A stretch of DNA of 33,786 nt from Octopus bimaculoides (lineage: Eukaryota). This document shows, piece by piece, positions 3,611 through 25,229 of this stretch. The notes beneath the pieces are model-generated. The model was given only the letters and a program-made list of their open reading frames with translations. It was not told the origin of the DNA and made no database searches. The stretch covers positions 10,699,050-10,732,835 of the forward strand of contig NC_068981.1 in the NCBI RefSeq assembly GCF_001194135.2. Reading direction: 5' to 3'. The translations under genes and the position numbers were made by a program. Each line of letters begins with the position of its first letter. The stretch's first letter is position 1.

Positions 3611-4862
3611 ACGAGAGGGTGCTGAAAGGTTCCTGGATTTAAGGGTAACGCGAAAAGGTAGAGCTGTTACCTTCACAGGAGAAGAAGGTTAATTGTTAAG
3701 GAGAAGATATGCAAAAAATCATGATGGTATACTATATATTTTACTTATTTTTGCAGATTTAACGCATGATTGCAGCTCCCACAGTGCATTTTGGTAATAC
3801 TGAAGCACATCCGGTTATGAAGTTCTTCTTTTTGTAAAGCAAAGGAGCTGCGGAAATCCATGGCGAGATAAAGGAAATTTTGAAAGATGACCGCCCATCT
3901 TACGCCACAGTAAAAATCTGAGTGTCAATGTTTCGGACTGGTCATTTCGAGGCCACTAGATGAATCCCGGTCAGGACGATCAACTTCCTTGACTACGGAG
4001 AACAAAGCCGACTCTGTACACGTCATCATTCTCGAGGACCACCGGATTTCAGCTGAGACTATGGGAATTTTCTGCGAAAGAATTGACCACATCATCCACA
4101 AAATTCTGGACATGTGAAAGCTTTCAACAAAATGGGTGCCGAAATGCCTGGACGCAGATCAGACGCGCTTTAGAGTGACGACATCAAAGGCGATTCTGAT
4201 TTTATGGCTAGTTTAATCACCCTGGATGAAACCCGGTTTCATCATTGTGACCCTCAGACTAAGCAGCAATCAATGGAGGGGCGAAACAGCGGTTCAACGT
4301 GTCTCAAGAAGTTTCTGACCCAGAAGCTAGCTGAAAAGTTTCTGGCTTTAGTGTTCTGGGAGAAAGACGGAATACTCCTCATAAAATACATACCAAATGG
4401 TGGTACCATCAATGCAGAATACCACATGTCTCTTTTGGACGAACTGTGTGATGCTTTGAAACAGAAACACTGAACTGTGGTGTTTTCCTTCTTCAGGACA
4501 ATGCACCAGCAGGCATAACACATGAAGCTCTACGGAAAATACGCGATTTAGGATTCGAACCGGTAGACCACACGCTTCACTCTGACTCTGACTTGGCCCC
4601 CTCTGACTATTACCACTTTCCTACTGAAAAAAAAACATCTCAATGAAACGAAATTTCACTCTGATTCGGAAGTCATCGCTGCTACAGAGGCCTGGTTGGA
4701 CACCCAATCTACCGACTTCTTTTGACAGGGTTTAGTAAAATTGAAGGAGCGTTGCAAGAAGTGTGTGAATTTGAGAAGGGAATCTGTTGAACAAAATCGT
4801 AATTAATTGATTGTCCTGTCTTTTCTTTCACACAAAACCAGGAACTTTTCAACACCCCTCGG
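3611..4862 (+). mobile_element. Full-length decayed mariner (DD34D) transposon
   Basis: ~26 bp TIRs (cgagagggtgctgaaaggttcctgg ... ccaggaacttttcaacacccctcg), about 1.25 kb. Motifs KWVPK, ITLDETRFHHCDPQTKQQSME, LQDNAP, SDLAPSDYYHF; multiple stops and frameshifts. Confidence 0.92.
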
Positions 4863-7310: not shown

Positions 7311-7481
7311 ATGGGTAACCGACAGTCATCCGTACCGGTGAGACAACGTCACATGTCTGGTTCTGAGATTAGATCAGGAATTTCTTCCCTAAATGATATC
7401 ACAGGAAAAAACTATTATTTTGAAAATTTAGTTCTTGAAGGGAACAACGTAAAGAGCCTGGCTTATGTAGGGGCTTTAAAT
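7311..7481 (+). CDS. Patatin-like phospholipase-fold gene, coding exon 1
   Basis: cag|G ATG; MGNRQSS...YYFENLVLEGNNVKSLAYVGALN|gtaagt. Matches the patatin FENLVxEGGGxKGxAYVGAL N-terminal motif. Confidence 0.88.
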
Positions 7482-7920
7482 GTAAGTGATTTGCTTTTTC
7501 ATCTTCCATTTTGGTTACGAATAGTGTTTTTTTATTAACCATAAAGGTTGAAACACCGAGGGGACAGCACAAGAGGTGGGGTGGGGGGGGAATTCGCCAA
7601 CGAATGATAAACGGAATATTTACAAATTTATGATCAAAAGAATAAAAATAACGATGAGGGAGGGAAGGACGGATGTGACCCCACGAACAACATTCCACCA
7701 CTGGACCTTTTCAGTACTTTTGTCATCCTTTAAGTAGACACCTTCACTCTCAACACTTCTTCCACTTTCATTTTGGTTTCGAATGTGAGCAGACAGAAAC
7801 TTCACTTCGAAGTCACCGTCACCAGTCTTCTTGTAAAAGTATAATTATGTACTCTACGAAAAACTGAGTAATTCTTCAGTTTAAATGTAAAGTTGGTTTC
7901 TTTTAATGATATTTCGTCAT

Positions 7921-8125
7921 AAGGCGGTGATCTGACAGAATCTTTAGCATGCCGGGCAAAATGCTTAGTGGCATTTCGTCTGTCTTTACGTTCTGAGTCC
8001 AAATTCCACCGAGGTCGACTTTGTCTGTCATCCTTTCAGGGTCGATAAATTATGCACCAGTTGCGTGCTGGGGTCAATGTAATCGACTTGCCCCGCTACC
8101 CACCCAAATTTCGGGCCTTGTGTTT
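7921..8125 (+). mobile_element. SINE family A
   Basis: aaggcggtgatctgacagaatc...gagtccaaattcc..gtcgactttgtctgtcatcctttcagggtcgataaa. Confidence 0.8.
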
Positions 8126-8153
8126 AGAGTAGAAGACAATATTATCTCAACAT

Positions 8154-8365
8154 GAGGCGTCGAGCTGGCAGAATCGTTAGCTTGTCGGGCAAAATGCTTA
8201 GCGGCATTTCGTCCGTGTTTACGTTTTGAGTTCATTGCCATTGGGGCCGAATTTGCATTTCATCGTTTTGGGATCGATAAAATAAGACTCAGTTGAGAAT
8301 TGGGGTAGCTGTACTTGACTTAACCCCTCCCCTTGTATTGCTGGTCTTGTGCCAATTTTTGAAAC
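8154..8365 (+). mobile_element. SINE family A, tandem second copy
   Basis: gaggcgtcgagctggcagaatcgttagc...tttcatcgttttgggatcgataaaataagac. Confidence 0.8.
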
Positions 8366-8784
8366 CAATTACATAACACAATATAAGGCAGCGAGTTCGG
8401 AATATCGTAAAGGAGCTGGACAAAATGTTTGGCATTTTCCCCGAGTCTTTAAGTTCCAAGTTCAAATTCTGCAGAGGCCAATTATGCCATTCATTGTCTT
8501 CGAATTGATGAAATAAGTAACAGCCGACTACTAGGTTGGATTTAAATGACTGTCTGCTTCCCCTCAAAATTACTGGACTTATGTCGAAAGTAAAAAGAAT
8601 TGTGACTCGACATAAACATAAACCCAGTTCGTATGCGATTTCGCGCATTATCGTCGATTGTCACGACTCGATAAGTTTCAATTGCTTCCCATTATTTCTA
8701 CCCATCTAAAGGAATCAGTTCCTCATTAAATACTTTGAATTGACACTAATCTAAATTGCTCTACCTCCCTATTTTTATCAATAG

Positions 8785-8932
8785 GTGCTGGACAAAGTTG
8801 GAATCTTAGGGAAACTGAAAAGATTCGCTGGTGTAGGAACTAGTGGCGTCATAGTTTCTCTATTAGCTGCCGATTTTGATTGCGATACAGTCCAGAGTTT
8901 GCTGAACGAGCATATTGATAATTTACTATTTG
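8785..8932 (+). CDS. Patatin-like gene exon 2 (nucleophile-elbow region)
   Basis: atag|VLDKVGILGKLKRFAGVGTSGVIVSLLAADF...NLLF G|gtaag, phase 0/1; aligns to KRFAGTSAGAIxAxLLA. Confidence 0.88.
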
Positions 8933-9001
8933 GTAAGACTTTAAATCAAACATTTTTCTTCCCTGTTGAATTTCTATCTAATTTTACTGCGTTACTTCAT
9001 A

Positions 9002-9025
9002 TCTATATATATATAAATGAGAATG

Positions 9026-9060
<35 letters not shown>

Positions 9061-9356
9061 GTGAATCCCTAAAACTCGAGAACTACGCAACCAATTTTAT
9101 TCAAACTTTACACATGCCTTACTTAGGGTTCCAGTTGTGTTTTAGTCAAAAAAAAATTATTAACTTCTTGCAGAGTTCGAGCACACGGCAACATAATATC
9201 TCCTCCACTATTTAAGTATTACGTGTCAAAAGTGAAACAAAAACACTCATGTCAAATACTTTCACTTTAAAAATGAAACTATTCCACTAACTGAAACAAT
9301 CACATTTCGATACTGTAGTGACAGATACTTTCACAGAGAGAGAAAGAGAGAGACAG
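9002..9356 (+). mobile_element. Non-autonomous Helitron-like element, 5' part (runs into a gap)
   Basis: A|TCTATATATATATAAATGAG start followed by (GTCT)n, typical of Helitron-type non-autonomous elements; 3' end not visible. Confidence 0.55.
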
Positions 9357-10450
9357 NNNNNNNNNNNNNNNNNNNNNNNNNNNNNNNNNNNNNNNNNNNN
9401 NNNNNNNNNNNNNNNNNNNNNNNNNNNNNNNNNNNNNNNNNNNNNNNNNNNNNNNNNNNNNNNNNNNNNNNNNNNNNNNNNNNNNNNNNNNNNNNNNNNN
9501 NNNNNNNNNNNNNNNNNNNNNNNNNNNNNNNNNNNNNNNNNNNNNNNNNNNNNNNNNNNNNNNNNNNNNNNNNNNNNNNNNNNNNNNNNNNNNNNNNNNN
9601 NNNNNNNNNNNNNNNNNNNNNNNNNNNNNNNNNNNNNNNNNNNNNNNNNNNNNNNNNNNNNNNNNNNNNNNNNNNNNNNNNNNNNNNNNNNNNNNNNNNN
9701 NNNNNNNNNNNNNNNNNNNNNNNNNNNNNNNNNNNNNNNNNNNNNNNNNNNNNNNNNNNNNNNNNNNNNNNNNNNNNNNNNNNNNNNNNNNNNNNNNNNN
9801 NNNNNNNNNNNNNNNNNNNNNNNNNNNNNNNNNNNNNNNNNNNNNNNNNNNNNNNNNNNNNNNNNNNNNNNNNNNNNNNNNNNNNNNNNNNNNNNNNNNN
9901 NNNNNNNNNNNNNNNNNNNNNNNNNNNNNNNNNNNNNNNNNNNNNNNNNNNNNNNNNNNNNNNNNNNNNNNNNNNNNNNNNNNNNNNNNNNNNNNNNNNN
10001 NNNNNNNNNNNNNNNNNNNNNNNNNNNNNNNNNNNNNNNNNNNNNNNNNNNNNNNNNNNNNNNNNNNNNNNNNNNNNNNNNNNNNNNNNNNNNNNNNNNN
10101 NNNNNNNNNNNNNNNNNNNNNNNNNNNNNNNNNNNNNNNNNNNNNNNNNNNNNNNNNNNNNNNNNNNNNNNNNNNNNNNNNNNNNNNNNNNNNNNNNNNN
10201 NNNNNNNNNNNNNNNNNNNNNNNNNNNNNNNNNNNNNNNNNNNTGCTCAAGAGTGGGCAGCAACAAAAAACCTATTTGTATATGCTCCACAAGGGAAAAC
10301 AAGGAACATAGTTTACAATGAGGTGTTATAATCACAACAACAAGAAAGTATGTACATGATCACCTTCTTTTACGAAACTTCATTGACTTTCATATATTTA
10401 TATTGATATACATATATATACGTGTGTTTGGGTGCGTGTGTGTATATACA

Positions 10451-10541
10451 TCTCTATATATAAAGATGATGCGTAGTCTAGACGGCGTTTTTAGATTTCA
10501 TTATTCTCTTTCACCCGGGCAACGCCGGGTATTTCTGCTAG
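10451..10541 (+). mobile_element. 91-bp mini-Helitron
   Basis: 5' TC after A, GC hairpin cccgggc-aac-gccggg, 3' CTAG before T; inserted at A|T. Confidence 0.7.
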
Positions 10542-11171
10542 TATATTATAAAATAGGTGACGTCAATTTTAATACAATGAGTTATTTACTGAAAAATACT
10601 ATGCTTCAGTATAAAGTATTTATAAAGTATTTATATCCATGTATACAGGCGGAAACTTAAACCGAGTCGTGTGAGAGCAAAAGTTTCCTTGTTTCAGTTC
10701 TGTGCGATTTGAGTTTATGTTTAAACCGAGGACAAGTTTGTGTTTTACCATTTCGGAGCTGTAACAGTTACGCCCAGGAGTCGGTGTTTTATTCTCTCTC
10801 TTTGTCAGTCTTTCTATTTCTGATAAAAAAAAGTGTTTCTATCTAAAGGTAAATGTACTCCGCCAGGTTTAAAATCCCTTAACACATGCGGTATGTTACC
10901 GTATTGGCACCACGATTCTATTAGTCAGGAGAGGATCCAAGGCAAGGCATCCGTGTTCGTATGTTATGTATTTATTTTCAAGCGTTTAATCTGATGAATA
11001 GAATACCAAACCTCGTTTTTGTCTCAGTAGATTAACGTACACTTTTACCGCTAAATATTGCCGTGCTGGTATTTTTTCTGCGTTGAGTCTATTTTGCTAT
11101 ACACGGTTTATAAATATGAAATTTATTTGCATCTTAATCGAAAACTTATGAAGGCAGTTATTTCTCTTTAG

Positions 11172-11302
11172 ATAATCAATGTGCTGTACTTGCAAAGGAT
11201 GTGATGGAAAAGTTGGGTCGTAATTCGGGAAGGAAGTTTTTGGAATGGTTTGGCAACATCTTAAGGATTAAATGTGGCAATGCTGACATTACCTTCAAAC
11301 AG
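11172..11302 (+). CDS. Patatin-like gene exon 3
   Basis: ttag|(D)NQCAVLAKDVMEKLGRNSGRKFLEWFGNILRIKCGNADITFKQ|gtgag, phase 1/0; G.....WF..........DITFxQ family motif. Confidence 0.88.
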
Positions 11303-11418
11303 GTGAGTTTGATATTTTCGCCACAGGTTCTCTTCGTCGTTAGTGTTTAAAAGTGAGTTTGTGATAGCTGTGCATTCGGATGTTATATTCTCTAGGCATG
11401 ACTGTGTGGTACGATTGA

Positions 11419-11530
11419 ATCCCTCCATTTAAGCGCTCGCGCGCATTCCCATTCAGTCCCTCCACTTGAGCTCTCGTGCACACTCCGATGAAAATCCCTC
11501 CACTTTAGTGCTCGCGAGCACTCCGATTAA
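11419..11530. repeat. Three imperfect ~37-bp direct repeats, one with a 14-bp palindrome
   Basis: Each unit starts tccctcca(c/t)tt; gtgctcgcgagcac is a perfect palindrome. Confidence 0.7.
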
Positions 11531-12423
11531 AATCACTTTTCCATTCGCAAAATGTGCCCCTTTTAATTTTGTTTAGATGGCTTTCAATTTTGGTGTATCG
11601 ATACAACTGTGAATTTGATTAAGATCAACCAATTACTATATCTCAAATTAAAGAATCTGATGTTATTTTGAATTAAAGTTGGGAAATTTGGGTAATTTTA
11701 ACCAATCAACGGACAGCTAGGTGTTAACAGCTTGTTACCGTGACAACCGCACGTTGTGTTGTTTCACCCACATGTGTTGGCTCTTCACACCACCAGATTT
11801 ACTTCATCCGCGTCTTTTTTCTTTAATAAGAATTTATATTTATCAATTAGAATTATATTAAATTTTTCACCAATTGTCTTTATATTTTACATATTTTTCA
11901 TATATAGCAAAAATAGTTTGCGATGTTTACAGTTTCTTAGCATTATGAAGGTGAATGGAATATGTGAACTTAGTACAGATAATTTGACATCAGTTTTGAA
12001 TTCTGCATGCAAAAACAAGATGCAGGGATTCTTTTTCTTTGGACAAATTCTTTGTTGACCAGTGTTATTCTTATCGTAGTTTACATATCCAAGCATGAAA
12101 TCGTTACACAACTATGAAGTTTTGGAGACAGACGCCCATTTTCTCAACTGACTTACTGGCTGGCTGGGCTTCGCTAACTGGCTAAACTCAGCAGCCGTCT
12201 CGCTTGCTCACTCACGGCGTACAGAATATTGAAATACGCATAACTAAACACAATCATTGCGCAGACAAAAGAAACAATAAGATGATACCTGTTTATTTTA
12301 TAAAGTATTTCTGTTTATATAGAAACTTACAATGCGGTGGTCATTTCACAGACGCTGAAGTGTAAATTTCACAGGGTACAACCTTAAGTTGACACCGCTC
12401 CGCTAAGCGCAGAATGTTTCTTT

Positions 12424-12490
12424 AGGTTTAAAAATCTAAACTGTATTTTTAGCTAAAAGGCTAAAAATACAGTTGTAGATTTTTAAACCT
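12424..12490. repeat. 67-bp near-perfect inverted repeat (hairpin)
   Basis: aggtttaaaaatctaaactgtatttttagc-taaaag-gctaaaaatacagttgtagatttttaaacct; 30-bp stem with one bulged G. Confidence 0.9.
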
Positions 12491-12631
12491 TTTCTTCTCC
12501 AATTTTTTTCTCCACAACATCATAGCAATTAGCCTGGAAAGGTATATTATTATAGCCGATTTTCACATTATTTTACTGTCTTTTGAAAAATGCATTTTTT
12601 TTTTGCTAATGAAAAAAATGTAGATCCAAGA

Positions 12632-12970
12632 TCCCTCCACTTCAACGCACACTCGTGGCACCCCGGTTACGACGACGAGGGTTCCAGTTGATCCGATCAA
12701 CGGAACAGCCTACTCGTGAAATTAAGACAAATGTCCCCTTAACGTAGTTCTCGGAGATTCAGCGTGACACAGGTTTTGACAAAGCTGGCCCTTTGAAATA
12801 CAGGTACAACAAGAACAGGAAGTTGTGGTGAAAAAGTACAGCACGTTTCGCCACCATCCCCTGCCGGAGCCTCGTGGAGCTTTAGGTGTTGTCGCTCAAA
12901 CACTCTCAATGCCCTGTCTGGGAATTGAAACCGCGAGTCTGCTGTCCTAACCATAAGGCCATTGCTCCTC
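12632..12970 (-). mobile_element. tRNA-derived SINE family C
   Basis: Reverse-complement similarity to 31159-31543 (ggaacagcc..ctcgtgaaatta; gggaattgaaaccgcga B box). Confidence 0.8.
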
Positions 12971-14211
12971 CCCTGAACATAAAAAAAAATAAACACTTGC
13001 TATCTCACATGTTAACAAAAGGATTTACATGCTCGCGCCCGTGAGTGAAAAATACTTACATGCACGGCTCTGGCCCTTTCTCACGGACACTCAATTCTTC
13101 TATGCGAAGGAAAGTACGACAAATACTTTTACTTTTCTAACGAAAATAAATGACTAGAAGAACTACATACATACTCTCTTGCTTAACTTCAACAACTAAG
13201 TAAAAACAGTACTCACTCGCCGGCTGGCTACACCATCACATATGCACCACACCAGGCCAGCAAAACAAGAGAGTAAAACACTAACTACATCATAACATAC
13301 ACACCACATTGCACGACACCACACCAAACCAGCAGAAGTAGACAGAAACTAACAGGAAAACTTATTCGCTATCACATATACACCACACCATTTCCAGTTT
13401 GCTATTACCCCTTCCTTCCTTATTCATGTTGTGACGGAGAAAAGCACGAGTATTATTATAGTAGATTGTTATGCAGAGCACTCTCTCGACCCTTCAACGT
13501 ATTAGGGTCCAGGAAAACATAGCAAATTCACACCTTCCCCACGTCTGGAAAAATGACTATCATCCAATGGCCACCCTGCATGCTGGATCAAAGCTGAAGG
13601 CCTCCAGTAGCTTTCTGTCCCCGTTGCTTCTTTCCATATAGCTCCTGTACTTAAGTGTGAGGGCGTCTTGGTTTGCTGAACAACCAAATATTATTGTAGG
13701 CATGGTTTGTGCAGACCCAGTTCCAATATCTGATCCCTCGAACTTGTCTTGATCTGGTGCAACGAGTACCACGATGAAATGTTTGTGTGGCGTTAGCTTC
13801 ACTTAGACGAACAGCAAAAGAACTAAGAGCTGAATGGTTTCTTCCGGTTTGGGTCGATTGGAGTGTTTGTGAGCGACCTATTTCTGGATCCAATTACGTG
13901 ATATGCTAGTTAACCCGAAATACAGTAAACACGGGGAACAATGGTGATTCAGAGCTGGTTCTACACTCCTGGAAACTCTGGAAGTCTCATGCTAAGTGCT
14001 CACTCACTCATTCATTAAATACGCGTGCGCGCGCGCGCCTGTGAGTATATACATATATGTTCATAAATATTTGACACATAGTGGATACAGTGTGTGAACA
14101 CACACACACACACGCACAATAACAAAAATTTCTATATATATATTTATATACATATATAATGTATAGATATATATAAACATATTACACAAACTGGATTATT
14201 TGATCTGACAG

Positions 14212-14347
14212 CTACATGACCAGACTGGCAAAGAGCTCTGTATTGTTGCGATGAATCTTAGCCGGAGGTGCGAAGAATATTTTCATGTGAAAACTACTCC
14301 AGATGCTGTGATACGCCGTGCAGTTCTCATGACCATATCATTCCCAG
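14212..14347 (+). CDS. Patatin-like gene exon 4
   Basis: gacag|LHDQTGKELCIVAMNLSRRCEEYFHVKTTPDAVIRRAVLMTISFP G|gtatc, phase 0/1; GKELC.V..N and KTTP...I..AV.MS.S.PG motifs. Confidence 0.9.
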
Positions 14348-15366
14348 GTATCTTGCATTTTAATCTCTGATAATGATGAATACTTTTCTTTTTCTAATCA
14401 TCTATCGAATTTCAGTTTCCAGCCTGTAACTGTACTAACTTTTGAAGTTTGTATTGTTTCAATACGCTTTTATGAACAGAAGCTATGTTAATCCCTCAAG
14501 GTGTATATTCTATAGTGCCAATAACTAGTCAATCATTCGTATAACTATTCGAAGTTCGTTATACGAGTCAACGGAGCCTCTACTTGGTAATTTTAGCCTT
14601 CAAAAAAAAAAAAAAATGCCAAATTCGGCTCAAACCACACTTTATAATAATTTTAGAGGAAAGTTCTTGGGTACTAAATTCAAGAATACATGAGCTTGCT
14701 TTATCAAGAGTTGGCTGTTTAGTTTAAGCTAAGACAAAACAGATAACCTCGAATACTTAGCCCTTTTTCTAATCGCTGGTGACTCTTGGCATTCAGATAG
14801 ATATAATAAAGTTTTACAAATATTTTTTGTAATGCCAAGAAAATATGGCGTTCAAACAACTGAATAGGCTTAGCGGAATTACGGGGCAGGGGTTAGCGGC
14901 AAATAACAATTTATAATTCCAGTAAAACTATAATACAATATATTTTAAATGTAATGAAGCATAATGTCCGGCAGTGTAAGGAGGTGATTTAATTTTCCAT
15001 ATGACTTTTATAAGGTTACAGCCGTTTCGTAACATTCGTGTACTATTTTCAATTTGAGTCTGCAAAATTATAGATACAAGATTGTATTCCGTATGTATTC
15101 TCAGCATTATACAATTGTGTATTCACAACTTGAAGCAAGTAAGGCTTACTCTTCAAATCACTGGGACATTATGGCTACATCTACAATTTAACTCTAATAT
15201 GATACAGAATAATGGTAAATAACGTAGTGATATCTGTATTGTGTGCTTGTCATACAATTGGTTATTATTGCCTGTCGATTTCTGGATGGATGTCATTTTA
15301 GTTGCCGTGTGTCGTTTTGACACCGTTGTTGTTATGCGTGACATTGTTTTCTAAATCAATTTTCAG

Positions 15367-15462
15367 GTATGTTTCAGCCAGTCAAGTACCATGTCGATGG
15401 ACAAGAATCGTATTACTTAGATGGTGGAATAATTTGCAATTATCCGATTAATTGCTTCGACG
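15367..15462 (+). CDS. Patatin-like gene exon 5 (DGG motif)
   Basis: ttttcag|(G)MFQPVKYHVDGQESYYLDGGIICNYPINCFD G|gtgggt; DGG..xNYP motif. Confidence 0.92.
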
Positions 15463-17214
15463 GTGGGTATGAAAGTCCTTTTAATGTTATTAATATTTTG
15501 AGAACAGAGGCAGATCCTTAAATAGATAGGGATCCTAATTTCTATAACAAATAATTTGGTGTGAATGTCTTTTTCTCTCTGTATAAACATACGACCGAGG
15601 GACATGAGCTGCACGAAAATGAAAGAAGCAATAGTATATTGTTGAGAGCAAATCTTTCCCAATATTTCTATGTAAACATTGCGATCAAGTTTTAAATTTC
15701 CCCGACATCTGACATCACATATTTAATCCATATTGAGAGTTAGACACAAGACCTGAAATTTTGTGGGGAGGGTTACATGAATCCCAGTGCTCGACTGAGA
15801 TGCACATCCTCGACTAAAAATAAAGTACATGTATTTTCTCATTGGTTCAATCGTCACCGACATGGGATAACAGGTTACGCTCAGTTGTGAACCACGTTAC
15901 ACTTACCACGGATTGATCTGAGATAATGCGGGTTGTTGATCAGCCGAAGGTTCTTGTACCGCACAACTGCAATCCAGCGAACTTCCACAATGCTCAGTTA
16001 ACAAGAATGTTCTGATTATCATGACTTGTGACGCCGCGTATTTTCTGGTGACAGATTTTCGTACTTATTAATCTGGAGCAATTGAGCAGAGAATACTCTG
16101 TACAGGAGTGGTGTGTTTGTGTGTGTGTGTGTNNNNNNNNNNNNNNNNNNNNNNNNNNNNNNGGGGGGGGGGGGGTAGAAAATACGAGATAGTGGGAGCT
16201 TCGCTGCTGTGAGTTTGGTGTCTATGAATCGACCATTCGTTCAACGTATCGAGTGCGTGGAGAAATCCCGGTGAATAACTAGGAAAGACGAACTGAAGGA
16301 GCTTTAATATTGTAAAAAAACGTGAGCTGTATTTATAAACTATTCCCAGGTGAGACAGATGATTGAAATTATTTCATGTAGAACGAAATCATTAACTTCG
16401 CAGCAGATATCAGACAACAGCAACAGATTCCACTAAATCGATGAGTCTCACACGAAGGGAAAAGGGGGATGTGAGTTCGAGTCCACAGCTAGTCACCTAC
16501 ACTTTTCTCTGCAAAATAGGGATAGTTTATCCTGTTCAGGCTATATTAGCATTATTCTGCGATTGAGAATTTAAAATCACTTCTTTAACTTTCTAAAAGA
16601 CATCTCAACGCTTCTAAAAGCAAACTTCGTTTGTTTGTTTACGTTTGTCATAATTTGAATTTAACCTGAAAATTATTTCGTCAGCTGTCTGTCCAAATAA
16701 GATTTTTATTTCACTCCTCACACGTTAATTTCCAACATTGCGATTGTTTTATTTCGAGATTTGAAGTTGCCACATGTCTTGTATAAATTTAAAGTGAAAG
16801 GTTTGAATAAATCCGTCAACTTAGACTTTAAAGCTTTGTATATTTTATACTTAGTGAGTTTTACTTCTCGTCTCATTGAGTTTGTTACTGTTTAATGTCT
16901 AAGTGTTATATCGTTATACCTAGAACCGATGCACTCAACCAAATTTTAAATTTTTACTCGGAATCTTTAGAACAATCCACACGAAATCCTTGTTAGACTA
17001 TCGCAAGCGAAGTAAGGAGTGGCTAGTTTGTAATGGGTTGTAGTCGTTTAACATATTGTAATAGTCAAATCAAATATTAAAAATGCATTCAAAATATATT
17101 TGGTTCGGCAACACATACGTACAGTATGTAATATATGTAGTGCTGCGAGGCTAATTAAGTTGCATTTAACGGAGAAATTATTTAAATACTTATGAAAAGC
17201 CATTTTATATTCAG

Positions 17215-17339
17215 GTTGGTGGCTGTCGATGGAATCAAAGAACAACTTTGTGGATCGGTGTTGTTCTGCGGCTGATGTTACAACTTTGTACAAAGGACGT
17301 TTCTTAGGCAAGAACTACGCCACACTAGGAATACTTTTG
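17215..17339 (+). CDS. Patatin-like gene exon 6
   Basis: ttcag|(G)WWLSMESKNNFVDRCCSAADVTTLYKGRFLGKNYATLGILL|gtgagt, phase 1/0. Confidence 0.88.
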
Positions 17340-18704
17340 GTGAGTTACTTTATATAATTAAAGCAAAACATTTGCTTCATGCGATTTTTACACTTTAAAA
17401 TATGAGAGGTATTGCCAGAATGATTGGTGTCGGAAATAATGCCAGTATACTTTAGATTCCATTATCTTCGTTTTGAGCTCATATCTTGCCAATGTCAGCT
17501 TTTCATTCTAGTAGTTCTCAAAGTACTGAAGGCGAAATGGTATTAGATTTATAGCTACAAATCTATGTACCATAAAATATATAGATTTCTATATTTATAG
17601 ATATGGATTTATACTTCTACAGATTTATTTGTATAAATCCATAAAGGTATATTTATACTTGTTTGTAACACCTATATAAACAGGTAAAAATACTTATACT
17701 ATTGGTAACAGTGAACACTAATGATTACACTAATACAAATATCCTTATAAACTACTTAAAAGTATTAGTTTGTTAGCATTAGATGTGACTGGAATTAGCA
17801 AGTAACTATTGGTTTAGAAGAGGTTTAACATTTCAGGCAGATCCTCTTATTTGATTCAGATATTGGAGCGACAGACATCTTTAAAAATAAATGAATAAAA
17901 TAGAATGAAATTTAAATCTGTTTCAGTATGACAACTATCATTATACGGAAGAGTACTGCATTGTTAAGCAACAACTCTGCATGGCTGAGACGAATGCATT
18001 GATACCTGATACGAAGCTCGGAAGGTATTTAATTACTAAACATTTTCCTAATCGTTTATAAGTGATTTGGGAATGGCCGACTGGTAGAGAAGAAATTCGC
18101 TTCATAACTATTTGGTTTCGTGTTTGTATCTTTAGCAGCATCTTTAGGAAATCGCTTCTATGATATCCTGGGAGCAACGAAAGCTTTATTAGGGAAATTT
18201 GGAAGGCTAAAACTTAGGCTAAAACTTAGGCTAAAACTTTGTGGATGGTAGAATAATCGGTCTCTCCTGGATTTAAATAATGCTAATTCCTACAGAGTCC
18301 CAAGGGCCTGCGAAGCAAAGTTCCAATGCGAGGAGAATTCCTTCCATCAATTATGATGCTGAAAAGGCCTGGAGACTGGCATTGTTTTTTCTAAGACTTT
18401 AAAAACACATTTCCTTAAATCAACTTTTTTACGATAGATTTAAACAGCCCTATACTTCAATTTCGTAGATGGAAACTGAAATAAACCTGAGTGTGTGCTT
18501 GTTCCCCCCCACCACACACCGCTTGAAAACTGGTGTTAATTTAAGTCTTTGTAAGCACTGACGCCCATTCTGTGGCTATGGTTTTTAAAAGGAACAAAAG
18601 CTTACTTTTGAAAGGTATATTGGTTAAATTGTAGCTGGATCTACATTAGTATTACCTGAATCTGAAGAGTTCATCATTACCATTTTAACTTTATATACTC
18701 TTTT

Positions 18705-18868
18705 ACTTGTTTCAGTCATTTGACTGCGGCCATGCTGAAGCACCGCCTTTAGTCGAGCAAATCGACCCCGGGACTTATTTTTGTAAGCCTAGTACTTATT
18801 CTATCGGTCTCTTTTTGCCGAGTGACGGACATAAACACACCAGCATCGGTTGTCAAGCAATGCTAGGA

Positions 18869-18933
<65 letters not shown>

Positions 18934-19108
18934 CGTATATACGACGGGCTTCTTTCAGTTTCCGTCTACCAAATCCACTCACAAGGCTTTGGTCGGCCCG
19001 AGGCTATAGTAGAAGACACTTGCCCAAGGTGCCACGCAGTGGGACTGAACCCGGAACCATGTGGTTGGTAAGCAAGCTACTTACCACACAGCCACTCCTG
19101 CGCCTATA
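18705..19108 (-). mobile_element. Full-length SINE family B (tRNA head, CORE-like domain, internal (GT)n)
   Basis: Reverse complement ggcgcaggagtggctgtgtggtaag...ggttcagtcccactgcgtggcaccttgggcaagtgtcttc...gatagaataagtac... Confidence 0.9.
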
Positions 19109-19286
19109 GCCACTCCTGCTCAGATTCTGTAAAACATTTTTTCGGATTCTTTTAAATCACTCGAAACACAAAATCAGGTTGTGCATATAATTTTAATTTT
19201 TCCTTCTAATAAGCTAACCTCTAATGATCTAATTAAATCTCTTTGTAAATTAATATTTCCCCAATCTGAAATTTCTTGGCAGACAA

Positions 19287-19367
19287 TTTAATGATGCTTC
19301 AGAGATATCGATGTTACAAATGGAAGTGTTTGAACGGTTTTCTGACAGCAATGAACAATTCTGCATG
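19287..19367 (+). CDS. Patatin-like gene exon 7 (acceptor uncertain)
   Basis: Open frame FNDASEISMLQMEVFERFSDSNEQFCM|gtaagt. The expected start at 19287 follows CAA, not AG; the nearest in-frame AG gives a start at 19305. Confidence 0.6.
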
Positions 19368-19797
19368 GTAAGTTGTGTACTTTTGTCGGGTGACTGGCAC
19401 GTTGCCTAACAGTAACTAGGATTAGTAGTTTCTACTGAGAAATTGTACTAGCAGTTAAGACAATCATAGTTATGTTTAAGCAAAGTGAAAGCTCCTAAAA
19501 TCATAATTTACTTGATCTAACAGATTAGTTTATGCATGCATCCATATTCTCACCCAAAATTTCCTTAAGGGTTATGAGGGTAGACTTCAGACCTCCCCCG
19601 TAAGGTCCTCTGAGAAACAACCTTCATTACACTTTGCGGCTGGATTCCCTATCGTTACAAAGATTATGGATATTAGCCAACCACCTTGTTCTTAGTTTAT
19701 CCCTTAGGTCTCTCATCGATTGGTTTTGCTTGGAAACTCCGTCTTGTAACTCCAGTCCGTTTTACCGGAGCTATGATCTCTCACTGCGGAGAAGTAG

Positions 19798-20024
19798 AGG
19801 CTCGATCTGGAGAAACTCCTTAATCTTGGAGCTACAAACCCAATGAGTAGTTACTCGGGTGGATTTGAACCGGAAGACAGTGTCAGAAGTGCTGATGGGC
19901 ACTTTGTTCGACGTACTGACGAATCTGTTAGGCAGCTACTTCATGTTTATAAGATCTTGCTGGATTATGCTTACACTCCGGAGGATAAAATTAGAGAGCA
20001 TTTCATTGCAGATCACTTTAAGAA
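19798..20024 (+). CDS. Probable patatin-like gene exon 8 (boundaries uncertain)
   Basis: Open frame ...MSSYSGGFEPEDSVRSADGHFVRRTDESVRQLLHVYKILLDYAYTPEDKIREHFIADHFK. Possible donors after 19944 (phase 0) or 20024 (phase 2), each compatible with one exon-9 acceptor. Confidence 0.4.
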
Positions 20025-20210
20025 GTCTGTCCAAATCTGTTTTCATATATTTTAATACACTACAACGAATGGTCTCTTTTGATCAAAATCCTTTGCAACA
20101 TATTTTAAAACTGAATTAAGAATAGATTTCAGATTTTAAGTAACTGTAGCTTCCATAAAATTACATACATGCTATTGGCTATAATACAAATGGCAGCCAT
20201 TTTGTTGCAG

Positions 20211-20282
20211 TTGTTGGACAGCTTGAAAGATTGCGATGATGCTGTGGAAATAAATTCATTGGCAAAAGTATTAAGCAGCAAT
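20211..20282 (+). CDS. Patatin-like gene exon 9
   Basis: ttttgttgcag|LLDSLKDCDDAVEINSLAKVLSSN|gtaagt; alternative acceptor starts at 20222. Confidence 0.65.
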
Positions 20283-20429
20283 GTAAGTAAAACCATTAGA
20301 TTCGTCTTTCTTTACTCATCCCTGCAGTATATAATATTTTGACTTGGTTGTGATGTAATAGTTGCATGTTAGAATCATATGGAATTAAATCTGATCAGCT
20401 GCGAAGTTCAACTATTTCCGAAAGCCGTA

Positions 20430-20690
20430 GACTGCACTGCTGAAGGATCGCTCACCGACACTCGTCAAGCATTAGTCTTACTTCCTGTCAGTCCTGCACC
20501 AGCATGTGATGTACTGAATGTTGCATGTCCCTTATACTTACTGTCCTTATTATCTTAACTGTCTAACTATGCACCGAACCGTTTTGCAAAAGTTGCAGCA
20601 TGTTTCTCCACTCATCTTAAGAATACAGCTAATGTTCAGTTTCATGCTTTATCACAAGCTTGGACAGACGTAAAATGTTCACTGAAATTG
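20430..20690 (-). mobile_element. Possible highly degraded Tigger N-terminal (HTH) remnant
   Basis: Minus frames give MKLNI..GET and MLVQD*QEVRL, loosely like Tigger MKLDI..GE and WIEDQ.QRR; many stops. Confidence 0.25.
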
Positions 20691-21685
20691 TCAAATTAGA
20701 AGTAAAAATCGGTAATTTGACGCAAAAGCTCTGTTTGTCTATCAAACTTCATTGACGGCATTAATCAACTTGACGATGGAATTGACTATTGACGAAGGTG
20801 CGGCACAATGGGTTCGCAATCGTAAGGTCATAGTTACTAAGCGAACCTTTTTATGCACACAGCCGCCATGCCCGCGTCTATATCACTGATATTTTACAAT
20901 AACACGCAATGTGTGACTCTCCGGTCAAGCAGATGGAGAGAAGGGTAAAACAAGAAACGGAGTGGGTGACTATCACAAACTCTGAAGGCAGGTGAATAGC
21001 ATTCAGATTTTTCTCTCGAGTCACTGGTATTTATGCTATAATAGAGAAAGCTGCTTATTAATTAGGCATGCAACAATTACTAAAAGTACTAAAAGAAAGC
21101 AATTATTACATGGTTGACCGTCTGGGAACATTTTTATAAATTCATGTTCTAAGAAATTTCCTGTAATTTCGATTTCTGAAGTTTCTTGAATTTTTTAACT
21201 CCAATTTCTCGCAAATTTAAATATTCATGCATCCAATTCACAACTTTAAATATTCATTGCATTCACTGCGGAGTAATCCATTCTCATTTGCAGAGTCTTT
21301 CAAGTTCTCTTATAAGTTTTCATTCGCAATTTGGGAAACCGTCAGCTTATTCTATTAATGTATACGTAATTATTTATTGAATGAAAAAAATTTAAATACT
21401 CGTATAATTTTTGAACGCGGGATAGATGTGAGAAAAGCCTAGAAAATTGGGTAATTACTTTTAGACGAGGAGAAAAAGTTACCGAGAAGTACTCGAAACT
21501 TGCACGCTATTCAGTTTCCAAACACTCTGTACCACTAAGCCAATATATACACGAGTTGCACGAGCGACTTCAACATTGACATACTCGCGCGCGCACATAG
21601 ATACACTGACACACAAATGAAAGGCAATGAATGTGTGTTTGCTGTTCATTGACAAAACTTGGCGCTGCATTACTTCTGCGAAGTT

Positions 21686-21881
21686 TTTTGTCAGTGAACA
21701 GGTCACGGTTTCAAAGTGAAGAAAATAGTTTGAGACAAATGAATTTTTAATTGCAGCGTGGAGGGTGTTTATAAGCCATTTAGGAAACGCACAAAAGCCG
21801 TTAGATCCTCTTCAACATTTAAAATTTAATTTGCCAAAATATTTCCGTCGCTTTGAGATCGAGACCTGTTCACTGACAAAA
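21686..21881. mobile_element. MITE-like element with 31-bp inverted repeats
   Basis: ttttgtcagtgaacaggtcacggtttcaaag versus ctttgagatcgagacctgttcactgacaaaa (3 mismatches). Confidence 0.6.
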
Positions 21882-21889
21882 TTCCGTTG

Positions 21890-22400
21890 TGTGTGTTTGT
21901 GTGTGTGAAGTTGTATACATATATAGACGCACGCATATATATGTGTGTGTGTGCGTTTGTTCCTCTCACCCCGTCTATCAGTGAATGGATACGTCTTAGG
22001 TTATATATGCGCATGTAACCTTATACATATTTACAAGTACACACAATCATATAGACACCTACACGCTCTCAAAAATATACGTATAATCTTAAAGTACACA
22101 CACACTACGCTTATCCATCTCTCTCTACACACACACACATATATATATGACACCGTTTTCAATGACAACGGTTAAAATTCAAATTTGCTTTTATTTTACA
22201 CGCATACATATACAATACATACGTATATCTACACACTAATACTTGCATGCATGTACATACTCATACACTAACATACTCACGTATACACACATACATCTAC
22301 AGATACGTATATACGTATCAAACTATATACGCTCATACGGTTATATATAACGACATATATTTATTTTAGTATCATGCATCTCAATATGTATGTATGGATT
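21890..22400. repeat. Degenerate (GT)/(CA)/(TA) low-complexity region
   Basis: Seen directly. Confidence 0.75.
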
Positions 22401-22639
22401 TCCACATGTAAATGAGAGAGAAGGGTAGCTAAAGAGGGGTCCTCCCGAGTGGAATCTTGATGTTATCCCATTGGGATTTACGGTTGAGAGTGGGTTTGTA
22501 TTCCTGTATACAGACAGCTTCAGTGACTTGTCTCAGCANNNNNNNNNNTTACGGTTGAGAGTGGGTTTGTATTCCTGTATACAGACAGCTTCAGTGACTT
22601 GTCTCAGCATTGCATCACTGGGATGTGTGGATAAGATGT

Positions 22640-23075
22640 TTAACTTTAGGTTAGTCGCACAAGCACCTTCTTGGAACTTAATCTGCTATACAGTGCTCTT
22701 GGTTTTGCAGTTCACATGTGGCTTTGTAGAACATACTACACAATTATTTTGACACGTGATTCTATCAAATGGATATGATCTACATAATGCAGATTTGATA
22801 GTCCTACCTGTCTTTTCTACAACTTTGATCTTAATGCCAGTTGTACGCAGAATTTTCTTGAATGCCTTGCTTAATTCGTTGTTAGGTGTAGCGTCAACAA
22901 ACATAACACTGAAATTTCTTGTTATCATACCAAATATTGTTTTTATTTCTTTTGTTGGTGTCCTTCTCTAACCGATTCCTGAACTAGTTGCAGTATAGGA
23001 GGCATATATAGTTTTCGTCTCTTAGAATGCGTTCGAATCTTGTTTTCGCTCCTTTTTAATGTTGAAGTGAAACTG
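22640..23075 (-). mobile_element. Penelope-like retroelement fragment (RT thumb, Cys-rich linker, start of GIY-YIG region)
   Basis: SVMFVDATPNNELSK..ILRTTGIKIKVVEKTGRTIKSAL.RSYPF..C..NCVVC...NCKTKSTV*QIK matches the PLE VMFVPxTP...IKVVExxG...C..C..C....VxYxI pattern. Confidence 0.7.
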
Positions 23076-23994
23076 GTACTTCTTAAATACAGAGATCCCT
23101 TAACGGTACTACTTAAATACAGGTGTTGCATCCAAAATATTTTAAATGTACGTTGTGTGGACGTGTAATGACACGCTAACTAAGCCTAAAACTAGCCCTT
23201 CCCTTAACCCTAAAACTAATCTTCCCTTTCATATCGTTACGTAGATGCATCGGGACCTCCTTTATTTAAGTAGTTCCGTGAAAGTAACGGATTCTGTGTG
23301 TTCTTGAATGGCTTACAAACACCTCCGCTGCAACTTTTGTTTCAGCACACGATCTCTCATCAAGTCACTTGCTATGCAAGTACATCTCTGTGATGTTTTA
23401 AAATCACTGGATAAATGCCAGCAATGACCTTCTCAAGCTCTCCAATATTTTAATTTCTAAATAGAAACACGCGGGGTCTGGGAGTGAGGTTGCAAAAAAT
23501 TCATTATTTCTTAAATTTTCTTTTTTATAGCATATAAATGTATTTATGGGGAAGAATATTGAAAAACACCAATACATGCGAGAGTGATAAAGAAACGAGG
23601 AACGTTGTCTTTAGATATGCTAGAAACAACATCCAAATCGCCCTTAAATCACTCGCTTTTCCGTCTGAAAATATTAACAATTTAAAAAATTTACCGAAAA
23701 TTCTCTTCCTGTGGGTTTGCAGTACCAAGGAAAAAAAAATTGGCCAAAACAGGTCAGGAGTGGGATGAGGGCGGGGTGTGTGGAAAAAAAAGCGTTTACA
23801 AAACTTTTTTCAAAGGTGCTCCCCACTAACCCATCATTTCGAAAGAATTTTCCCCACAAATTACATGCACCAACTCACTCAATTTCGATTGACACCAAAC
23901 ACATCTCTAAAAACCGAGTTCTTGCGGATTCATTTTCCTGTCCAAATCAATCTCCCATTTTTTACTAGTTTCCTAAATGTCCTTTTTGTCTTAG

Positions 23995-24099
23995 GAATGT
24001 TTGAGTGCCACGGAAAAAGAAGTCCTGTTTGGAAATGCGATGATCAGTGAAGCTGAGTGCATTGAATTCTTAAATAAGATAAGTAATGGCAATGATATG
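23995..24099 (+). CDS. Patatin-like gene exon 10 (EF-hand-like insert)
   Basis: ttag|ECLSATEKEVLFGNAMISEAECIEFLNKISNGNDM|gtgagt, phase 0/0. Confidence 0.82.
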
Positions 24100-24194
24100 G
24101 TGAGTAACGTTCTATGACGTTGTAATCGATAACTTGTGTTTTGTAATCAATTCAAGTGTATGAGTTCAGTTGATTGGTGCAATTTCTTTTCAAG

Positions 24195-24347
24195 TTGGCC
24201 GTCTCAGATATGGAGAATCTCTTGGAGAGTAAAAACTGGGCGTTATATAGCCAATGCTTATGCAGTGAAAGGATTGAAATAACCAACCACTTTTGTTACT
24301 GGGGAGTTATAGCAAATGTTTTACACAGCGGTACCAGTAAAGTATTG
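24195..24347 (+). CDS. Patatin-like gene exon 11
   Basis: ttttcaag|LAVSDMENLLESKNWALYSQCLCSERIEITNHFCYWGVIANVLHSGTSKVL|gtaagt, phase 0/0. Confidence 0.82.
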
Positions 24348-24662
24348 GTAAGTAACGAGTCATAAATATAGTTCATTGTCACTTTAGCGTGAAGTCTCTC
24401 ACCTTAATTGTAACCCCGAATAAGTTATTTCATAGCTTTCATTGCGATAGACCTCTGCTTTAATTCTCGACGCTTATTTGCCGCAAGGATTAGTTTAGAG
24501 AGATCTACTTTATCATTTGTAGCGATTAAACATGAAAATATGACCAGGAATTGCTCTATGAAATAATGAGTGTTGAGACGGATCATCATCTGTTATGTCG
24601 GATTTGAATCATAAACTTACATTTACATAACTTAGAACTGTGTGTGTGTGTGTGTGTGTGTG

Positions 24663-24890
24663 TGGAGGTGCGTGACTTAGTGGTTAGGGCGTTGTTCCCC
24701 TGTTCGTAAGACTGTGGTTTCGATTGCTGGGCGATGCGTTGCGTCGTTGAACGAAACACTTAGCTCTACGTTGCTCGTCCAACAAAACTGAGTAATCCTG
24801 CGGTTGACCAGCGTCCTGTCCAAGAGGGGAATGTTACACCACAAAATCTGGGGAACTGGCCTTATGAGCCCTTGGCTTGGGAAGGACCTG
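24663..24890 (+). mobile_element. CORE-type tRNA-derived SINE, diverged
   Basis: ggaggtgcgtgacttagtggttaggg...gtttcgatt...aacacttagctctacgttgctc; follows (TG)n. Confidence 0.7.
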
Positions 24891-24977
24891 TGATCCCTAT
24901 TTTTTGTTTTTGATATATGTATGTATATGTATCGGTATGTGTATTTTAGGAACTTGTTTACTTAATTTTTCTTGCAG

Positions 24978-25073
24978 ATGGACAATTTTGAAAGGACTGT
25001 TGGTGTATACACTGGATATATCGACAACAGCGCACTTCATCTCGAAGAAGCTGATGAAAGTTATCTCTTTCAG
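24978..25073 (+). CDS. Patatin-like gene exon 12
   Basis: tttttcttgcag|MDNFERTVGVYTGYIDNSALHLEEADESYLFQ|gtgaat; RTxGIxTxYI...F.L...D..xL motif. Confidence 0.88.
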
Positions 25074-25181
25074 GTGAATATAAATTTCACAAATTTTATT
25101 TATTGCTTTTGACATTTATACACTGTCTAAATGCTTGAATTATTTTGTATATGTAATGTGTATATGATTATATATATATAG

Positions 25182-25229
25182 CAAGGATGGAACTGTACTG
25201 TGTCTTATCTGCGGCAACTTACCATGTGA
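25182..25229 (+). CDS. Patatin-like gene, terminal exon 13
   Basis: tag|QGWNCTVSYLRQLTM*; QG...T..FL patatin C-terminal helix; AATAAA at 25371. Confidence 0.85.
   Translation, partial: QGWNCTVSYLRQLTM

Follow-up and report, generated by a model that had tools for sequence, protein, structure and literature searches.

A candidate patatin-fold pseudoenzyme from a serine-less cephalopod clade in Octopus bimaculoides

The stretch of DNA considered here (the window) comprises 33,786 nucleotides of the Octopus bimaculoides genome (RefSeq assembly GCF_001194135.2, contig NC_068981.1, positions 10,699,050 to 10,732,835 of the forward strand). Positions 7311-25229 of its + strand carry a 13-exon gene, LOC106878189, currently annotated as an ‘uncharacterized protein’, whose spliced product is identical letter for letter to RefSeq entry XP_052834477.1. 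We consider it probable (roughly 0.6, judged from sequence) that this gene encodes a patatin-fold pseudoenzyme that is maintained and non-catalytic, is probably N-myristoylated, and binds lipids or has a regulatory role. Glycine occupies the position of the catalytic Ser in the predicted protein, and as far as its sequence indicates the canonical Ser-Asp mechanism cannot operate. The loss of Ser is not particular to this gene, but rather defines a whole clade.

The gene model itself is already present in RefSeq; the clade adds a new animal form to a protein type familiar from plants. Our literature searches on cephalopod or EF-hand patatins and on animal patatin pseudoenzymes returned no description of a Ser-less patatin clade in cephalopods or in any animal. 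Patatins lacking this residue have so far been discussed mainly for plants (the pPLAIII subfamily), where their mechanism is still unclear. The animal case has a clear evolutionary history, in that a clade shared by octopods and cuttlefish, with four genes in octopus, exists beside two intact paralogues. It represents a natural experiment on the use to which a patatin fold is put in the absence of catalysis and Ca2+ control, and the octopus protein offers a tractable system for asking whether GxGxG-type patatins are truly active.

Catalytic motifs and predicted fold

An oxyanion loop of the form G-G-G-x-[KR]-G is replaced in the octopus protein by E43-G-N-N-V-K-S49 (7437-7457, + strand), wherein only the first Gly and Lys48 remain. 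The nucleophile elbow, GxSxG in canonical relatives, reads G73-V74-G75-T76-S77 (8830-8844), with Gly at the position of the catalytic Ser. The catalytic Asp is retained within Y-Y-L-D214-G-G (YYLDGGIICNYPI, with D214-G-G at 15420-15428), which conforms to the D-G-[GA] motif. A first-pass annotation of this DNA had described the degenerate EGNNVKS loop, the altered KRFAGVGTSGV elbow and the intact Asp motif, and had concluded that no canonical Ser-Asp dyad is present. These observations are all upheld by the comparisons that follow.

The assignment of the nucleophile column was examined with HMMER alignments to Pseudomonas ExoU and Legionella VipD. The GVGTS segment aligns with GSSAG of ExoU column for column, without gaps and with the following helix in register. 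A profile built from 57 family members matches VipD (E 3e-23) and ExoU (E 3e-22), and its GaSaG falls on the GASAG and GSSAG sequences of these proteins. Because the alignments are ungapped, the nucleophile column corresponds to Gly75, and Ser77 lies in the column of the second Gly (+2). Among 269 family sequences, this column holds Ser in 221, Gly in 33 and Asn in one, and is gapped in 14, indicating that the deviation is real and is not an effect of alignment. ExoU and VipD are the closest solved relatives by sequence and fold, and exhibit collinear GGGAKG, G-[AS]-S-A-G and DGG motifs. However, they are bacterial effectors with intact dyads and other C-terminal domains, unlike the octopus protein with its Gly at the Ser position and its GNN loop.

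Membership of the patatin family, as proposed in the first-pass annotation, is supported by a match of residues 40-223 to the Pfam Patatin model (PF01734) at 51.6 bits, above the cut-off of 27.7, although this is the lowest score in the family, in which canonical members reach about 98 bits. An AlphaFold2 model derived from a 57-sequence alignment has a mean predicted local distance difference test score of 86.7 and a predicted template modelling score of 0.83. Foldseek relates this model at probability 1.00 to CapE, CapV, VipD, Pat17, PlpD, iPLA2-beta and ExoU, with E values of about 1e-9 for the first four of these. The sequence match and the model together indicate that the predicted protein has a patatin fold. 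CapV and CapE, the best structural matches, are effectors of cyclic-oligonucleotide-based antiphage signalling systems (CBASS) and are likewise patatin-fold proteins, in their case enzymes switched on by a ligand. They are, however, bacterial, activated by cyclic nucleotides and catalytically intact, and the fold alone is shared (14-17% identity). In the model, a strand at residues 70-74 is followed by a helix at 77-85, which would place Gly75 at the tip of the elbow and make Ser77 the first residue of the helix.

The serine-less clade and its parent family

A search with the complete protein recovered 145 full-length homologues, and the octopus protein is nested in the tree of an ExoU/VipD-like family with which it is collinear over its full length. 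Members of this family are found in molluscs, annelids, echinoderms, hemichordates, amphioxus, cnidarians and a sponge, and are characterized by an MG- start, EGGGxKG, GxSxG and DGG motifs, and EF-hands that Pfam can detect. The octopus protein resembles these canonical invertebrate EF-hand patatins in its MG N-terminus, in exon-by-exon collinearity and in having a patatin core with a helical module before the last strand, but it lacks their EGGGxKG and GxSxG motifs and their detectable EF-hands. Its N-terminus, MGNRQSS, is probably an N-myristoylation signal, and an MG start is present in 20 of 21 aligned family members.

Searches of six octopod Ser-less proteins yielded no Pfam EF-hand match even at E<=1, whereas relatives from Haliotis and amphioxus score 29-36 bits, and the family alignment reveals loop positions that are visibly degenerate in the octopod proteins. 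The C-terminal RTVGxxTG strand and its helix align with VipD in the family profile and are modelled by AlphaFold2 as a strand plus helix. Given this agreement, the helical module that once formed EF-hands is an insertion within the patatin domain.

Six family members are encoded by the O. bimaculoides genome (2.34 Gb), namely the gene in the window, two genes on contig C9 and three on contig C11. Both C9 genes are canonical, with EGGGSKG or EGGGNKG loops and a GASAG elbow; an O. vulgaris / O. sinensis orthologue (LOC115216174, P0140) pairs with C9a in the tree. The three C11 genes are arranged in tandem (8.906-8.929 Mb) and combine EGCGxK[AG] with GVGTG, GAGTG or GMGSG. These tandem paralogues (C11:8906700-8928800; L021, L022 and L023) have short introns, with two on the + strand and one on the - strand. 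In one of them, LOC106880001 (L022), exons 5 and 6 are fused (221 nt), indicating the loss of an intron, and the fusion is shared by its O. sinensis orthologue.

In a tree of 111 sequences, the Ser-less cephalopod proteins form a single clade of 16 (Shimodaira-Hasegawa-like approximate likelihood ratio test, SH-aLRT, support 100), consisting of 10 octopod sequences and six further sequences. LOC106878189 groups with sequences from O. vulgaris and Argonauta (SH-aLRT 100), and this orthogroup is sister to the C11 group, with both Octopus and Argonauta represented in each orthogroup. All 16 members carry G-x-G-[TS], which corresponds to G75 and T76 in our protein. One 90% cluster of the six further sequences includes a cuttlefish protein, Acanthosepion (Sepia) pharaonis CAE1247306.1, along with a dozen Logan contigs of transcript size. 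The presence of cuttlefish members in the clade implies that Ser was lost before octopods and decapods split.

Other catalytic residues have fared differently in the two parts of the clade. Asp214-Gly-Gly and Lys48 are kept in nine of the 10 octopod sequences, the Asp of one Argonauta paralogue having changed to Asn. Within the cuttlefish-containing group, five of six members have N, G or S in place of the Asp, and changes to the oxyanion loop are seen in four of the six. One member of this group, P0034 (L028, 3001-4458), is intronless and is found on an 821-kb contig of an ENA metagenome assembly (ERZ21867824). Oxyanion loop, Ser and Asp have all been lost (the sequences now read ASGSTEG, GVGTG and SGS, respectively), and the gene has the appearance of a retrocopy carried by a host-derived contig of the ‘metagenome’.

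Among the four Ser-less genes of octopus, LOC106878189 is the most derived, with its G-V-G-T-S elbow and its G-N-N oxyanion loop. Its Ser77 is specific to its own orthogroup, in which it is conserved in O. bimaculoides, O. vulgaris, O. sinensis and Argonauta, while Gly occupies this position in all other Ser-less members. Such conservation might be expected if Ser77, two residues past the canonical position, had taken over as a register-shifted nucleophile in this orthogroup, as the first-pass annotation had offered as an alternative. We consider this quite unlikely. Ser77 is at the +2 Gly place, as the first helix residue of the model, and not at the elbow tip, and the resulting GTSGV sequence lacks the small +2 residue required by an elbow. 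Moreover, the same orthogroup has the most degraded oxyanion loop of the family (GNN), and the ancestral state of the clade, GVGTG, contains no Ser, so that activity would need to have been regained after a long Ser-less interval. Ser77 is better explained as a late, orthogroup-specific replacement of the +2 Gly at what is modelled as the N-terminus of a helix.

The first-pass annotation also held that the gene is maintained, and comparisons with orthologues bear this out. The GVGTS elbow is kept in the orthologues from O. sinensis, O. vulgaris and Argonauta hians, the latter two being 93% and 60% identical, respectively, to the O. bimaculoides protein in pairwise alignment, and the loop reads GNNVKS in Octopus and GNGPKS in Argonauta (GN[NG]xKS overall). 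Exon structure is shared as well. All 13 exon lengths (171, 148, 131, 136, 96, 125, 98, 85, 72, 105, 153, 96 and 48 nt) are identical in the O. vulgaris orthologue, and the A. hians orthologue exhibits a one-codon difference in each of two exons. Amino-acid divergences of 7% and 40% demonstrate that these orthologues are not annotation copies of one sequence. Against O. vulgaris, dN is 0.036 and dS is 0.120, giving an omega (dN/dS) of 0.30 (bootstrap 95% interval 0.19-0.48, with none of 300 replicates reaching 1); against Argonauta, omega is 0.17-0.25 depending on the method, at a dS of about 1.3-1.6. Two C11 orthologue pairs yield 0.50 (0.34-0.76) and 0.26 (0.18-0.40). Thus the gene and its C11 paralogues are under purifying selection, being constrained but not strongly so.

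These data also bear on whether the gene might be a decaying pseudogene or an assembly artefact, with its odd motifs arising from lost constraint, sequencing error or exons hidden in gaps. Three runs of N do fall inside the gene span, and the Pfam score is the lowest of the family. However, the 13 exons are free of stops and frameshifts and all splice sites are canonical, every gap is intronic, identical motifs occur in independent assemblies of three other species, and omega is significantly below 1. We regard decay or artefact as very improbable and take both to be refuted by the intact open reading frame (ORF), the matching exon lengths and the dN/dS values.

Interpretation of the serine loss

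The history of the pseudoenzyme that we favour can be outlined as follows. The gene descends from the invertebrate ExoU/VipD-like phospholipase family, whose members combine an MG start, a GGGxKG loop and the GxSxG-DGG dyad with two EF-hands set within the patatin domain. In one copy, before octopus and cuttlefish diverged, the nucleophile Ser was replaced by Gly (G-x-G-T-G) and recognisable EF-hands were lost, and this copy then diversified into the four octopus genes. Its product presumably no longer performs Ser-Asp acyl hydrolysis and may be anchored to membranes through N-myristoylation. The cleft, with its Asp214, hydrophobic core and Lys48 of the anion-binding loop, is retained and could accommodate a partner protein, a lipid or an acyl ligand. 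Hence the protein might have a sensing, scaffolding or regulatory role that is independent of Ca2+, and its targets may include the two canonical paralogues in the genome.

The most economical reading of the clade points in the same direction. Some members persist without the Asp and with an altered oxyanion loop, and those from cuttlefish are transcribed, suggesting that the function of the clade does not need hydrolysis. The non-catalytic role put forward in the first-pass annotation therefore gains support from the cuttlefish-group and Argonauta losses described above.

Several considerations weigh against this interpretation. Nearly every octopod member keeps Asp214, Lys48 and a hydroxyl residue at +1 (Thr76), which could mean that some chemistry is retained. 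The dN/dS values of 0.3-0.5 reflect only moderate constraint. Both the myristoylation and any partner protein are features that we infer from sequence, and support for the gene comes from the RefSeq model together with conservation. An exact look-up of the protein among transcript-derived contigs gave no match, which is uninformative because the canonical P0140 cluster likewise has no Logan members.

A further counterexample is offered by plants. The esterase box of pPLAIII proteins is changed from GxSxG to GxGxG and is conserved throughout the subfamily, the DGG Asp is usually kept, and lipase activity has nonetheless been reported (PMC7031755). The octopus protein is similar in having a patatin domain with a Ser-less esterase box, a retained Asp and conservation as a group. 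It differs in that its elbow is G-x-G-x-S and that two oxyanion glycines are also lost, although the C11 paralogues do have G-x-G-x-G. The octopus clade nests inside the animal family in a tree built from animal-family sequences, and for this reason an origin independent of pPLAIII seems likely.

Loss of the nucleophile has occurred repeatedly. The tree shows a minimum of four changes at this position, one each in the cephalopod clade, a second clade of seven members, amphioxus P0059 and P0179 (GTNYG). Three of these lineages involve Ser to Gly, and in all three the elbow is mostly G-x-G-T-G. The second Ser-less clade (P0186, P0094, P0166, P0178, P0192, P0197 and P0221) has mostly lost the Asp. 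P0059 (Branchiostoma lanceolatum XP_066299541.1) has GVGTG with its Asp and EF-hands intact and one oxyanion Gly changed (EGAGHRG).

As raw associations among non-redundant sequences, the Asp is lost in 12 of 25 Ser-less members versus one of 86 canonical members, and Thr or Ser is present at +1 in 22 of 25 versus two of 86. The pattern of Asp loss suggests that catalytic constraint was relaxed after the loss of Ser. When each feature was tested against Ser loss by phylogenetically paired comparisons, only three to four independent contrasts were available, such that significance is unreachable. We therefore treat the coupling with Thr at +1 as a lead and not as a result.

The main rival to a non-catalytic function is that the protein is a non-canonical hydrolase that cleaves acyl esters or thioesters without an elbow Ser, using Asp214 as a general base on water or Thr76 as the nucleophile. 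The high retention of Asp214-Gly-Gly and Lys48 among octopods and the activity reported for plant GxGxG patatins would both be in keeping with such chemistry, as would the occurrence of Thr or Ser at +1 in 31 of 33 Gly-type versus seven of 221 Ser-type sequences of the 269-sequence table, which holds across all three independent Ser-to-Gly lineages. Against this stands the degraded state of the oxyanion loop, which reads GNN in Octopus and GCG in the paralogues. Proteins of the cuttlefish-containing sister group, as well as one Argonauta paralogue, also persist without the Asp. The +1 association derives from few events, and in one of these lineages Ser is found at +1 even in the canonical sister (GSSSG). 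Overall, we view non-canonical hydrolysis as a possibility to be taken seriously, albeit an unlikely one.

A more speculative and rather improbable proposal is that the G-x-G-T-[G/S] elbow is no dead remnant, but a functional motif that evolved convergently with at least three origins. As a glycine-rich strand-turn-helix bearing a hydroxyl, it would bind phosphate, a nucleotide or a lipid head group in a manner akin to Rossmann or P-loop motifs, or would support Thr- or water-based chemistry. If this were true, the clade would constitute a new, expanded coleoid class of membrane-anchored lipid sensors or enzymes.

For the non-catalytic pseudoenzyme that we prefer, a functional precedent by analogy is ABHD5. 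This protein, also called CGI-58, carries Asn in place of the nucleophile Ser. It is thus a conserved lipase-fold protein without a nucleophile Ser, and illustrates that pseudoenzymes derived from lipases can be key regulators, as in its control of ATGL. ABHD5 is described as a lipid-regulated, membrane-bound co-activator of the patatin-domain lipase PNPLA2 (10.1101/2025.05.06.652485). However, ABHD5 has an alpha/beta hydrolase fold with no homology to patatins, and a regulatory role for the octopus protein is something we infer.

Gene model, assembly gaps and neighbouring sequences

The first-pass annotation had placed the ends of the gene exactly, from the ATG at 7311 to the TGA at 25229, and had reported an intact exon structure with compatible phases. 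The 13 exons form a single 487-amino-acid ORF, with AG/GT at all boundaries and consistent phases. Exons and assembly gaps are as follows.

Exon 1, 7311-7481, + strand: start ATG, phase 0 to 0; MGNRQSS and the degenerate oxyanion loop EGNNVKS (7437-7457); length as in O. vulgaris
Exon 2, 8785-8932, + strand: nucleophile elbow KRFAGVGTSGV, with G73-S77 at 8830-8844; Gly75 codon GGA (8836-8838) in place of the catalytic Ser
Exon 3, 11172-11302, + strand: length matches O. vulgaris
Exon 4, 14212-14347, + strand: KELCIV...KTTPD...SFPG core
Exon 5, 15367-15462, + strand: retained Asp motif YYLDGGIICNYPI, with D214-G-G at 15420-15428
Exon 6, 17215-17339, + strand: GWWLSM...
Exon 7, 17927-18024, + strand: length matches O. 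vulgaris
Exon 8, 19283-19367, + strand: 85 nt, placed from the O. vulgaris orthologue
Exon 9, 20211-20282, + strand: remnant of EF-hand loop 1 (KDCDDAVEINSLA), with the acid at position 12 lost
Exon 10, 23995-24099, + strand: degenerate remnant of EF-hand loop 2, NKISNGNDM
Exon 11, 24195-24347, + strand: length matches O. vulgaris
Exon 12, 24978-25073, + strand: RTVGVYTGY..., the last strand of the patatin fold, downstream of the inserted helical module
Exon 13, 25182-25229, + strand: stop TGA at 25227-25229
Assembly gap, 9357-10243: 887 N in intron 2; exons 2 and 3 are contiguous in homologue alignments, with no extra O. vulgaris exon there
Assembly gap, 16133-16162: 30 N in intron 5, between a (GT)n run and a G-run
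Assembly gap, 22539-22548: 10 N in intron 9; the preceding 61 bases (22478-22538) are repeated exactly right after it (22549-22609)

Since the 13 exon lengths are identical to those of the independently assembled O. vulgaris orthologue, no exon is hidden in the gaps. The 61-bp repeat around the 10-N gap is an assembly overlap artefact. Matches to ‘IPVYRQL’ by tblastn at 22500 and 22571 appeared exon-like on both sides of this gap, and were rejected because a stop follows and they lie within the duplicated flank. An alternative placement of exon 8 at 19932-20028 was likewise abandoned; it has a weak GTCCAA donor and a chance similarity to a paralogue exon, and the O. vulgaris orthologue directs the exon to 19283-19367.

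Existing annotations of this gene and its orthologue vary. An older O. bimaculoides RefSeq model (XP_014782815.1, P0126) uses an upstream exon 3 acceptor, adding six amino acids (GSYFSL), and has a different last exon. The O. vulgaris orthologue (CAI9715823.1, P0004) bears the misleading name ‘NHL repeat-containing 2-like’, which is unsupported, as Patatin is the sole domain found.

The introns are rich in (CA)n / (GT)n and (CTGT)n microsatellites and low-complexity runs (18890-18950, 9020-9060, 16100-16132 and 21860-22420), and two of the three assembly gaps abut such runs. Elsewhere in the window, the - strand has an exon-like ORF (1959-2387) for an acetyltransferase domain of the GNAT / FR47-like type (Pfam FR47, E 1e-9). 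A gene of this kind is also present upstream and on the opposite strand at the O. vulgaris locus, indicating that synteny is conserved. A fragment of a mariner-type transposase (4174-4473, + strand; Pfam Transposase_1, E 7e-12) is located between the acetyltransferase and patatin genes.

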